DNA from: Zygnema circumcarinatum SAG 698-1b
Lineage: Eukaryota; Plantae; Zygnematophyceae
Reading direction: 5' to 3'
Assembly: GCA_037447605.1 (NCBI GenBank)
Contig: CM074804.1
Span: 1,116,001 to 1,180,000 of the forward strand
DNA: 64,000 nt
Under the pieces are notes generated by a model. The model ran no database searches. It saw only the letters and a list, made by a program, of their open reading frames with translations, and was not told the DNA's origin. The position numbers and the translations under genes were made by a program. This document shows positions 51,501 through 54,500 of the stretch, piece after piece. How positions within the stretch are numbered: the first letter of the stretch is position 1; each line of letters opens with the position of its first letter.

Positions 51501-54500
51501 ATATATATATATATATATATATATATATATATATATATATATATATATATATATATATATATATATATATATATATATATATATATATATATATATATAT
51601 ATATATATATATATATATATATATATATATATATATATATATATAGAGAGAGAGAGAGAGAGAGAGAGAGAGAGAGAGAGAGAGAGAGAGAGAGAGAGAG
51701 AGAGAGAGAGGAAAAGAGAGAGAGAGAGAGAGAGAGAGAGAGAGAGAGAGAGAGAGAGAGAGAGAGAGAGAGAGAGAGAGAGAGAGAGAGAGAGAGAGAG
51801 AGAGAGAGAGAGAGAGAGAGAGAGAGAGAGAGAGGAGAGAGAGAGAGAGAGAGAGGAGAGAGAGAGAGAGAGAGAGAGAGGAGAGAGAGAGAGGAGAGAG
51901 AGAGAGAGAGAGAGAGAGAGAGAGAGAGAGAGAGAGAGAGAGAGGAGAGAGAGAGAGAGAGAGAGAGAGAGAGAGAGAGAGAGAGAGAGAGAGAGAGAGA
52001 GAGAGAGAGAGAGAGAGAGAGAGAGAGAGAGAGAGAGAGAGTATGGTGAGAGAGGAGAGAGAGAGAGAGAGAGAGAGAGAGAGAGAGAGAGAGAGAGAGA
52101 GAGAGAGCGAAGAGAGAGAGAGAGGGAGCGGGAGGGCGAGGCGGTGGAGGACGGAGAGAACGAGACAGGATTTTAGGAAGGCAGCATATAAGTGAGAAGG
52201 AAAGAGAGGGAGAGAGGCGATGAGTAATAACCAAAGAGACAGAAGGATAAGGAAGGTGTGGGACAAGAAGAAGGGATATGCTCTTCACATCATGATTGTG
52301 CACGGCTCTAATGAATGAACATAAAGGTTGAAGCTCAGAGAAATTCTTATGGTAGTTAGAATCTTCAGATTCCAGAAAACCCTACAATCATATAAAGATA
52401 AAGCTCGTAGCAAGGTCAACATTGATCTCATGCAAGCCCTAATGTATACATCCTAAACGGCACACCCTTACTTATCCAGAAGAGAATTACGTGGTACAAA
52501 GGTAGGGAGAAAATGATAGATGAAAAGACCACTCACTCTAAACTTGCTCGGAGGAGATCGAACCGCTCGAGCACTAATTTCTGCATTCTGAGAAGTACCG
52601 GTCGGAACACCAAAATGCCTTCTAGAATGATGATCAGAAGCAGTACTGCAGTTGTTGTCCACGTGATAATAAGGAGAGAGTGAAGGTGACCTTTGGCTGC
52701 AGCGTCATATCTATCCACTATGTCCTCCATAATTACAAAAAATTTACCTTCATTATCGAAAATGTTCTGCACCCAACGCAGTTAGATGCCCTCAGAGTGC
52801 TGAACATGCAATAAGGCCAAAAGATACAAAATGACAAGCGTTAATATTGAGCTAACAGTGCGCATAAACGAAACCGAAGCTGCCATCACTGGCAGCAAGT
52901 GAAAAGGTTTGCAGCTTGGCTGCATACAGAAATACGAGAGCGAAAGTGCAAAAGAGAAAATGTACAGAGAGAACCCAGGAAAACGAGGGAACGAGACTTA
53001 GAAGAGAGTGGAAGGGTGCAACACTGGAATGGAGACAGAAGGAGAGAAAACTGACAGATTGGCAACGGCGGTGGAGGGGAATGGAGGTGAGAGGGATACA
53101 GAGAGTCAAGGGAGTGAAAGCTGGTCAAGACATTGAGCATTAAGTTAGATCTCACCTGCGCATATGGTTTCAGTGCTGTTACATTCAGCTTTCGAGCAGA
53201 ATACTCCGCGTCTTTTGCGATTGCAACAATCGCTGTTCCGGCGGTAAACAGTGCATCAAAGCTAGGCTGAAGAGTTTTGAATAGATTGAGCTGTCCTCTA
53301 CTCATTGTCGCAGGCACTCCTAAAATGCTGTTACCTGTTTGCAGGCCATAATGGCCAGCGAATAACCTTTGTATGGAGCTCTGCAAAGGTAGAGGAAGGC
53401 ACAGAAAGTGGCAGAGCGAGAGTGTGTGTGAGAGAAAGTGAGAAGAGAGGAGATCCCTGTACGTTCTTGAAGCACCAACTTCGCAAAACTCTAAATCTGT
53501 ACGACTCAAGGAATCCAGGGCGAGGGAGCACATTTTCCCTCTCTCCCTCTGCCTCTCCCTCTCTCCAAGTGATTCCTCCAGAAGAGTACGTCATATCATC
53601 CTCCGTAACTGAACGTACACACGGCTATTGGCGATTTGTGGTTTGATGTGGCCAAAACATTCCATAGGCTCCAAAGGCCTGAGGCTCTAATCTCCCAAAG
53701 TCTTCGAGAATCTAAGTATCCTCCACAACCTTAGAATATTCCTGTCTTCACTGCTTTAAAAACGCACCTGCAGCTCGTCCACAGTTGAGGCAATATCGTG
53801 ATCGGATCCTGCAAAAGTCAAAAGAAGAGCCGCACTTTTTGCAATCCTCTGATCCAACATCCTTTGGCGCCCCGCAACATTCACAACTCTGGAATCCGTG
53901 TATGAGCGGTTCACCCATACCTGCATAGAGCAGCGACGAAGACAAACAGCAACTGTCTGAGGAAACCGACTGACATATGCAGGGCGATGCTTAGGATTGT
54001 GAGGGTTTACGGTCCCTGGCACCTTGCCCGACTTAAGGTTTCGGAAAAAATTCCTCCAAAAAAGGTGAGGAAATGGGAAGAAAAAGGAGCGGTATGTAGC
54101 ATACCTGCACGATTATCTGCCCACCCAGAGCCAGCAGACAAACCACCACCATGCAGGTGCTATATGCGACGGCGAGGTTCCGTATAACATGGGGCTTGCC
54201 CAACTGATCAGCTTCTGCATAAAACAACTGAAAACAGACCTCAGAAAGTAGGCGAGATAGAGATACAGCTCTCTCTATCCCTCTTTCACCCCCCTTTCTC
54301 TATCTCTCCTCCCCTCTCCTCCAAGCACCCATCGCTTCTCCCTCCCATCCCCTGCTGCTTTCACCATACATTTCTGGAATGAATTCTTAAAACACTCAAA
54401 AGTTGAAAAGCTAAATATTCGGAAATGGTACACTCTCAGAGAACCCTTGATCCTTAGATTGTGGAGGTTCACTATTTTTAATGTGGTGATTAAGCTGTCA

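Follow-up and report, generated by a model that had tools for sequence, protein, structure and literature searches.

A zygnematophyte receptor with a bacterial PilJ/NarX-like ectodomain and a degenerate kinase output

The window analysed here is a stretch of 64,000 nucleotides from Zygnema circumcarinatum SAG 698-1b (contig CM074804.1, positions 1,116,001 to 1,180,000). It holds a zygnematophyte gene that is real and expressed and has a degenerate output. We interpret the gene product as an expressed two-pass receptor with a bacterial PilJ/NarX-like ectodomain and a His-less output, either kinase-dead or non-canonical, or else as a decaying copy, and we give this reading a probability of about 0.6. 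In its most likely form, a true sensor kinase was duplicated and one copy became a His-less receptor, kinase-dead or non-canonical. The original prediction had named the gene a histidine kinase; judged from its sequence, the window copy cannot be a canonical one, because a cysteine stands at the phospho-histidine position, the H-box is out of frame, a receiver domain is missing and the G2 box is shortened.

The sensor is encoded by four exons on the minus strand (41, 51, 75, and 76 codons plus 2 nt), which are joined in phase and on inspection carry AG acceptors and GT donors throughout. In their spliced product a PilJ/NarX-like four-helix sensor stands between TM1 and TM2, so the predicted in-phase GT-AG structure from TM1 to EGILVFRP was borne out, with all of the quoted peptides present. 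The parts of the gene are as follows.

55797-55868, minus strand: tentative first coding exon, with an ATG at 55868, a phase-0 donor (CAG/GT) at 55796 and weak resemblance to the N-termini of Spirogloea and Mesotaenium
54105-54227, minus strand: exon 1, a basic cytoplasmic stretch and TM1; TM1 and the junction are near-identical in Spirogloea P0151
53768-53920, minus strand: exon 2, sensor helix 1 with the N-box/P-box
53156-53380, minus strand: exon 3, sensor helices 2-3 and the loop motif; alignable both with bacterial PilJ domains and with the algal relatives
52537-52766, minus strand: exon 4, sensor helix 4, TM2, EGILVFRP and the start of the output helix; phase-2 donor GA/GTGAGT
51133-52128, no strand: (GA)n/(TA)n microsatellite of about 1 kb within intron 4 (TRF: period 2, 499.5 copies)
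50995-51054, minus strand: H-box remnant of 20 residues, with a Cys codon at 51042-51040; a short way upstream, its frame is closed by a TGA at 51066-51064
50739-50853, minus strand: transcribed part of exon 5/6, DHp helix alpha-2 (RNA contigs, with the joint 50735/50395, and frame analysis)
50199-50399, minus strand: exon 7, last part of DHp alpha-2 followed by the first part of the catalytic domain (RNA joints in contigs X1, X17 and X19; collinear with P0083, P0151 and P0152)
49714-49938, minus strand: exon 8, HATPase_c core (PF02518 match of the exon alone; RNA joints)
48570-49382, minus strand: exon 9, remainder of the catalytic domain, a low-complexity tail of about 250 residues and the stop, with no receiver domain (RNA contigs)

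The spliced frame is open over 777 codons with canonical splice sites throughout, and the mapped coding region contains at least seven spliceosomal introns, or eight if the tentative start exon is counted. The frame of exon 1 has no ATG ahead of the stop at 54302, and the start must therefore sit in an upstream exon; the assignment of 55797-55868 to this role is speculative. Predicted proteins from three other Zygnematophyceae run without interruption across each junction of the sensor exons, and the proteins predicted in Mesotaenium, Spirogloea and Closterium remain collinear with the gene onward into the HATPase_c domain. At the level of sequence, sensor and HATPase_c are thus encoded by the same gene, as had been proposed. 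RNA contigs from three studies cover the kinase half of the gene, where they show strong and consistent expression and confirm the three 3' introns (exons 6-9), so that the transcript support for splicing concerns this half. Flanking exons amounting to 1,474 nt are identical to RNA, with 0 differences.

Several lines of evidence support a sensor that is a PilJ/NarX-like (PF13675) four-helix bundle flanked by two TM helices. Exon 2 on its own matches PF13675 (PilJ) with 35.7 bits (E 9.7e-9; cutoff 26.6), in agreement with the domain originally named, and the algal relatives P0083, P0151 and P0152 score 28.2, 34.2 and 34.6 bits. A four-helix bundle between two TM helices is seen in the window protein, and the sensor subtype is marked by the N-box, a loop of the form H.GL..G...LG.P, a helix of the form E..FL..MD.IV..Y, and TM2 followed by FRP. 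The Pfam, structure and atlas comparisons had window pieces and the Mesotaenium orthologue as queries, not one full spliced protein. In predicted structure, the best Foldseek match is the ligand-binding domain of McpN, a nitrate chemoreceptor of Pseudomonas aeruginosa (PDB 6GCV), which has a PilJ-family four-helix bundle and was also matched over its full length with a sequence profile; a phmmer search of PDB with the Mesotaenium sensor found McpN only weakly (E 1). McpN shares the N-box with the algal sensor, including the nitrate-binding Arg, but it is a chemoreceptor with HAMP and MCP signalling, has an identity of only ~17-18%, and does not have the Asp that the algal protein carries at the [ST] position.

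The likeness to NarX does not extend to the cytoplasmic part. NarX and NarQ were not matched by the sensor sequence profile at E<=1, and these Escherichia coli kinases differ in that the algal protein lacks HAMP, a GAF-like domain and HisKA_3. No HAMP or HisKA_3 match was obtained in the window pieces, P0083, P0151 or P0152, and TM2 passes directly into the output helix with no HAMP between them. The H-box of the algal relatives is of a divergent HisKA type (SHELQEPL), unlike the HisKA_3 of NarX/NarQ.

In the sensor tree, the algal sequences form a single clade nested among bacterial ones, and Mesotaenium, Spirogloea, Closterium and the window gene make up this zygnematophyte clade. With nearest relatives that are bacterial and at least seven introns, the gene fits the proposed bacterially derived receptor that has acquired spliceosomal introns. 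Nearest in the tree are hybrid kinases of Botrimarina and Aeoliella and the PilJ-HisKA_3 kinases of Christiangramia, Marinoscillum and Cyclobacterium, in which the sensor subtype is shared over its whole length, FRP follows TM2, and the kinase is fused without HAMP. They differ from the algal gene in being intron-less, in their intact H-box, and in the cognate sigma54- or NarL-type regulator adjacent to them within reductase clusters; the kinases to which the nearest bacterial sensors are fused adjoin nitrite/nitrate reductase genes (nirB-type, NIR_SIR, nrfHA). When exon 2 was searched against 1.84 billion representatives, the 150 matches listed were mainly multi-PilJ bacterial proteins, with P0083 as the sole eukaryotic relative among them; word-indexed searches returned Spirogloea, Closterium and a small number of bacterial PilJ kinases. 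The zygnematophyte clade lacks a receiver domain, its HisKA signal stays below threshold, and the domain lists of a 2026 zygnematophyte kinase phylogeny do not include it.

Related receptors have been reported before. Kabbara et al. 2019 (PMC6324907) described N-terminal sensing regions of NarX-like type in KniteHK29/44, PpateHK38 and SmoelHK12/15 as well as in an amoeba, and already proposed an origin by HGT and nitrate sensing for these kinases. The claim that histidine kinases of land plants lack this sensor is consequently contradicted by PpateHK38 and SmoelHK12/15, and that of an undescribed small-anion sensor fails in the word 'undescribed', while its ligand part remains reasonable in view of the reductase neighbourhoods; candidate orthologues had, at least in part, already been described. 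The kinases of 2019 are likewise streptophyte and have an N-terminal region resembling bacterial NarX, a likeness taken from their published description, but the window copy differs from them in having no His, and its clade in having no receiver and a sub-threshold HisKA. No Klebsormidium, moss (Physcomitrium) or lycophyte (Selaginella) protein appeared in the homology or structural searches; the region-restricted search missed even known orthologues, so its blanks mean little.

The state of the H-box bears on the output. The remnant has Cys at the phospho-His position and lies in a frame that differs from both flanking coding frames; the H-boxes of the relatives keep His (YVAHEVQEPL, YVSHELQEPL, YISHELQQPL). 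The translated exon carrying the H-box region showed no HisKA signal in Pfam, tblastn with three orthologues gave no other H-box in the intron, and no AG acceptor is able to bring the remnant into frame. It is probably removed with intron 4 and lies outside the mature mRNA. An RNA contig is identical to a 43-nt core that includes the Cys codon, and the organism expresses what reads as a second copy, likewise with Cys (one 168-nt contig with 30-letter overhangs). Between the window and this second copy, at least two indels are needed in the H-box region, and the flanks differ by substitutions as well. Contig X1 record 5 was rejected as the true sequence of the window locus, since its flanks differ by substitutions plus indels. 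The DNA-run word shares of 0.80 fit an H-box region that is present as assembled, by arithmetic only.

The expected place of DHp helix alpha-1 is occupied by a low-complexity linker rich in R, G and E. The stretch of exon 5 is GC- and purine-rich with all three frames nearly open, so that ORF continuity means little there. Upstream, the RNA contig of exon 5/6 breaks off near 50889, where the sequence is GA-rich; the genomic frame is open up to a candidate acceptor at 51102. An intron within exon 5/6 (donor near 50951, acceptor 50826) was rejected because RNA contigs cross 50826 to at least 50853, and because no acceptor enters the H-box frame.

Farther downstream, the catalytic domain is well recognizable. 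Exon 8 alone matches PF02518 (HATPase_c) with 48.7 bits (cutoff 26.4) and contains the N box (LISNALKFT), G1 (DTGEG) and the F box. The G2 box of the window reads SAGLAL as against the canonical GxGLGL and is 5 residues shorter; the corresponding residues are GAGLAL in Closterium, and the glycines of the canonical box are retained in Mesotaenium (GTGVGL) and Spirogloea (GTGLGL). No receiver (REC) domain was found in the downstream frames of the window or in the three algal relatives.

The same observations bear on two other accounts of the gene. A canonical functional sensor histidine kinase, in which the lost H-box reflects local assembly errors or an overlooked exon, is very improbable. His is kept in three of three orthologues, expression is high and downstream splicing correct, and the H-box region is GC-rich and outside the span of the window-locus RNA contigs, so that an assembly error is conceivable. 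However, the Cys codon is inside the core exactly matched by RNA, an independent second transcript has Cys as well, the remnant with a TGA ahead of it cannot be framed by any AG acceptor, and the orthologues reveal no further intronic H-box. An assembly error would also require the two or more indels relative to the second copy, yet the 1,474 nt of flanking exons show no RNA differences, and a relay of eukaryotic style would have no receiver domain. The second account, an expressed pseudogene whose protein, should it be produced, plays no part in signalling, is unlikely but deserves more weight. A decaying duplicate would be consistent with the frame-shifted remnant and its several indels relative to the paralogous transcript, the shorter G2 lid, the linker in place of DHp alpha-1 and the 1-kb microsatellite in the adjoining intron. 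Against it stand the 777-codon open frame with canonical splice sites, the strong and consistent expression in three studies, and sensor motifs and N, G1 and F boxes that are as conserved as in the orthologues; moreover, the terminal branch of the window gene in the sensor tree (0.63) is similar to that of Mesotaenium (0.60). High expression together with conserved sensor motifs argues against a dead gene.

Concerning the ligand, a nitrogen oxyanion is plausible, given the reductase-gene neighbours of the closest bacterial sensors, the retained Arg and an N-box that agrees at 11 of 12 positions. The McpN-class pattern is [IVL]-[ND]-x-A-G-x-Q-R-M-L-[ST]-Q; the window has Asp at [ST] and does not satisfy it strictly, but keeps the nitrate-contacting Arg (McpN R61) as well as the Gly and Met contacts (AG-R-Q-R-M-L). 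Among the relatives, Closterium matches the pattern fully, whereas Mesotaenium and Spirogloea do not: the [ST] position is again Asp in Mesotaenium and Cys in Spirogloea, and in Mesotaenium the contacting Met is, in addition, replaced by Glu. Bacterial homologues from nitrate clusters all have Ser/Thr there. The Asp, and the Glu of Mesotaenium, mean that the ligand may differ, and a functional sensor for another small anion or for a ligand unrelated to nitrogen is a possibility that we hold at somewhat above one in three. It draws on these departures from the strict N-box and on the surroundings of the algal gene, and is opposed by the kept Arg and Gly, the perfect N-box of Closterium and the consistent proximity of reductase genes to the nearest bacterial relatives. 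No nitrogen-assimilation gene was noted beside the algal gene, and the LCIB gene nearby, once held to be suggestive, adds nothing.

Under the preferred reading of a His-less receptor, and by analogy with McpN, NarX and NarQ, a sensor dimer would bind nitrate, nitrite or a like small oxyanion through the N-box Arg at the dimer interface, and binding would then move TM2. The output would proceed without canonical His autophosphorylation or phosphorelay, leaving DHp alpha-2 and the HATPase_c with its short G2; the receptor may signal through its ATP-binding domain or in partnership with a paralogue. Alternatively, it may be a still-expressed copy on its way to a pseudogene. Loss of the phospho-His is known from subfamily-2 ethylene receptors and plant phytochromes, which have two-component ancestry, keep an HK-like fold and signal by other means. 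The sensor domains of these His-less plant receptors are unlike that of the window, and they retain the DHp helix, whereas in the window copy DHp helix alpha-1 is itself disrupted.

The perception of external nitrate by plants and related algae is under active study, and we found no functional follow-up in the literature to the nitrate-sensing idea put forward in 2019 for Klebsormidium, moss and Selaginella. A eukaryotic membrane receptor that carries a NarX/McpN-type ectodomain offers a candidate open to direct testing, since this domain, once isolated, is small, helical and easily expressed. That Zygnematophyceae, the sister lineage of land plants, keep a bacterial-type extracellular nitrate/nitrite receptor whose family switched in Zygnema to a His-independent output is a long shot; the switch is suggested by the two expressed copies with Cys at the phospho-acceptor position. 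Such a receptor would, if true, be a eukaryotic cell-surface nitrate sensor with a mechanism unlike that of NRT1.1 or NLP7. New here are a defined zygnematophyte clade without receiver domain and with a divergent H-box, the reductase neighbours of the closest bacterial relatives in support of the ligand hypothesis, and a window copy that has lost the phospho-histidine yet is strongly expressed. Because of this loss it is the copy to avoid as a model for kinase assays, and it illustrates the drift of a two-component receptor towards a His-less condition.

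The original observation stands, and its interpretation holds in part. The locus is a real, expressed receptor gene of the PilJ/NarX-like type, bacterial in derivation and read on the minus strand. The four GT-AG exons of the original prediction do splice in phase and contain all of the quoted peptide strings; they make up the sensor half:

Exons of the sensor half
54227-54105, minus strand: exon 1, AG acceptor, GT donor, phase kept
53920-53768, minus strand: exon 2, AG acceptor, GT donor, phase kept
53380-53156, minus strand: exon 3, AG acceptor, GT donor, phase kept
52766-52537, minus strand: exon 4, AG acceptor, GT donor, phase kept

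In their product a brief basic segment precedes TM1; a domain of ~175 residues comes next, then TM2 and the EGILVFRP motif. Exon 2 on its own matches Pfam PF13675 (PilJ; 35.7 bits, E 9.7e-9) above the curated cutoff of 26.6 bits, and hence the PilJ motif is not due to chance. Beyond the long intron 4 follow an exon for helix alpha-2 of DHp, two catalytic-domain exons and a final exon whose extended low-complexity tail runs to the stop at 48570; exon 8 alone reaches 48.7 bits against HATPase_c. The gene model using RNA-defined borders comprises 2,334 nt in frame, with all introns GT-AG. Because a stop at 54302 lies in the frame of exon 1 with no ATG between, the start codon is placed outside this exon, tentatively in a candidate start exon at 55868-55797 whose predicted N-terminus is like those of the relatives. 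A tract of ~1 kb in intron 4 (51133-52128) is almost entirely (GA)n, with some blocks of (TA)n, and another GA array is found at ~55270-55560 in the putative first intron.

When exon 2 was searched against 1.84 billion representative proteins, the matches listed included bacterial PilJ proteins and, from eukaryotes, a single one, Mesotaenium endlicherianum ME000112S10993 (P0083), while further searches recovered Spirogloea muscicola SM000013S26429 (P0151) and Closterium CLOP_g9300 (P0152). All three possess the order TM, PilJ, TM, HATPase_c, and a receiver domain was found neither in these three proteins nor in the window gene. The window gene is collinear with them across every exon and every predicted exon junction is continuous sequence in the three relatives, indicating that the sensor and kinase halves belong to one gene. 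Intron content aside, this collinearity is also the chief sign that the gene comes from a zygnematophyte-like alga. The public model of P0083 shows no convincing TM1 in residues 1-72, unlike the Spirogloea and Closterium proteins and the window gene, and a wrongly predicted first exon is the probable cause.

RNA-type contigs, compared with the kinase half only (48450-51125), gave the joints 50735/50395, 50197/49936 and 49713/49381, each GT..AG on the minus strand (sequencing runs X1, X17 and X19, from three studies). Word depth in this region is 125-306 in exons versus 2-16 in introns, and the contig-covered stretches have zero letter differences and zero indels. These data show a strongly expressed gene with correct splicing in its 3' half. 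The junctions between sensor exons, and that from exon 4 to exon 5/6, are predicted from cross-species collinearity; RNA-type runs contain 68-86% of the words of 52537-54230, a figure that counts intron words too. The proposed RNA check of the junctions succeeded for the three 3' joints, the presence of spliceosomal introns is supported, and the HATPase_c domain expected after the sensor is in place.

The sensor assignment holds as well. A profile built from the alignment of sensor domains (A1) matches Pseudomonas aeruginosa PilJ (E 3e-29) and, as a full-length match, McpN's nitrate-binding domain (6GCV; E 9e-24). For the Mesotaenium sensor AlphaFold predicts a four-helix bundle with confidence (pLDDT 94.7), and Foldseek gives McpN as its top PDB match; the best AlphaFold DB clusters are 'NarX-like N-terminal domain' proteins (TM up to 0.84), and ESM-Atlas features likewise indicate PilJ. 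In McpN the nitrate site is surrounded by the N-box [IVL]-[ND]-x-A-G-x-Q-R-M-L-[ST]-Q, with R61 as key residue and contacts from G58, A59 and M62 (Martin-Mora et al., PMC6381276). The window N-box agrees at 11 of 12 positions, keeping Arg, Gly and Met with Asp at the [ST] position. Closterium shows a full match, Mesotaenium has Glu replacing Met plus Asp at [ST], and the Spirogloea box carries Cys. Nitrate or nitrite as ligand is plausible, at slightly less than even odds.

Beyond the N-box, the algal sensors and a bacterial subfamily both carry H.GL..G...LG.P in a loop and E..FL..MD.IV..Y in helix 4, and in both FRP comes straight after TM2 with no HAMP domain. Maximum-likelihood analysis groups the four algal sensors in a single clade (98/93; window sister to Mesotaenium, 99/93) nested in this PilJ-TM2-FRP subfamily, which is split from chemoreceptor-type PilJ domains at 100/100; the predicted bacterial origin of the sensor is borne out, and no donor lineage is resolved in this tree. 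Named members of the subfamily are Planctomycetota and Bacteroidota, the sensor being paired with HisKA_3/NarL in the latter, whereas a hybrid kinase and sigma54 regulator are found in the former.

Genes beside the bacterial kinases
Botrimarina (L001/L002) and metagenomic P0153: nrfH-nrfA, sigma54 regulator
Aeoliella straminimaris (L003): NIR_SIR reductase, flavoprotein, globin, sigma54 regulator
Christiangramia (L006), Marinoscillum (L008), Cyclobacterium (L010): PilJ + HisKA_3 kinase with NarL-type regulator and nirB-like reductase in all three
Marinoscillum, Cyclobacterium: also siroheme methylase
Christiangramia: also MFS transporter and molybdopterin oxidoreductase

Neighbours of this kind were absent from the flanks read at one Pirellulaceae and one Aeoliella locus. 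Since the other kinases of this subfamily adjoin nitrite/nitrate reductase genes, a nitrogen oxyanion is the best-supported guess for the ancestral ligand, from gene association rather than proof.

The designation histidine kinase does not fit the window copy. Relatives have the H-boxes YVAHEVQEPL, YVSHELQEPL and YISHELQQPL, while the sole H-box-like string of the window (50995-51054, minus strand) has Cys (codon 51042-51040) in place of His. It is out of frame with both the upstream exon 4 and the downstream helix alpha-2, a TGA directly precedes it in its own frame, and the RAIR piece after it occupies the third frame. No AG lies between TGA and remnant, so no acceptor can rescue it; for these reasons the remnant, as assembled, cannot be translated as an H-box. 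Starting at a candidate acceptor (51102), the genomic frame linking exon 4 to alpha-2 has no stop and encodes an R/G/E-rich linker, in which no HisKA signal was detected. The X1 word share for 50150-51125 (0.54) is exactly reproduced by the contig pieces matched there, and from 50890-51102 X1 holds k-mers of a 43-nt core only, though other introns are present at depth 2-3 (exons, 195). This suggests that the remnant lies outside the abundant mature mRNA, with the true acceptor in the GA-rich tract at ~50854-50890. DNA-run word shares of 0.80 are consistent, by arithmetic rather than direct view, with the H-box region as assembled. The window G2 box, SAGLAL, has five residues deleted; Closterium has GAGLAL, and Mesotaenium and Spirogloea retain canonical glycines. 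Given the assembly, we put at roughly three in four the probability that the output of the window copy is not canonical His phosphotransfer.

The 43-nt core (51011-51053) comes from an X1 contig of 168 nt at depth 43.7; on either side of the core, this contig departs from the window through both substitutions and indels. Read in gene sense, it runs in one frame and aligns well with Mesotaenium RSVAKLMVGYVAHEVQEPLACCMRAIKAAGELL. This one short contig points to a second expressed copy in the same organism, outside the window, with an apparently intact frame and Cys at the phospho-acceptor position. As the paralogous transcript also has Cys, the His-to-Cys change would probably be older than the duplication, the window copy having lost its frame later.

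NarX-like N-terminal sensing regions have been reported in KniteHK29, KniteHK44, SmoelHK12, SmoelHK15, PpateHK38 and an amoebozoan kinase, with the suggestion that the region was acquired horizontally and served to sense nitrate during terrestrialisation (Kabbara et al. 2019, PMC6324907); we liken these to the zygnematophyte clade by description, not sequence. The statements that land-plant kinases lack this domain (SmoelHK12/15, PpateHK38) and that such a sensor is undescribed in streptophyte algae (KniteHK29/44) accordingly do not stand in that form, and the zygnematophyte locus varies on a known streptophyte theme. Eukaryotes are unmentioned in a 2021 review of nitrate-sensing kinases, and the kinase clades of a 2026 zygnematophyte phylogenomics paper comprise HisKA, HATPase_c, REC, CHASE, MASE1, GAF and PAS, with no PilJ. 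Text search found no other literature on PilJ/NarX-like domains with algae or Zygnematophyceae; in the literature searched, the zygnematophyte subfamily and the His-less state appear unreported.

Beyond the catalytic domain, 48570-49320 encodes a Pro/Ser/Gly-rich tail of ~250 residues with no Pfam match; the tails of the relatives are likewise long and unconserved. Elsewhere in the window, 2001-4000 (G+C 0.73, GC skew -0.89) and 20001-22000 (G+C 0.66, GC skew -0.63) are presumably C-rich low-complexity repeats.
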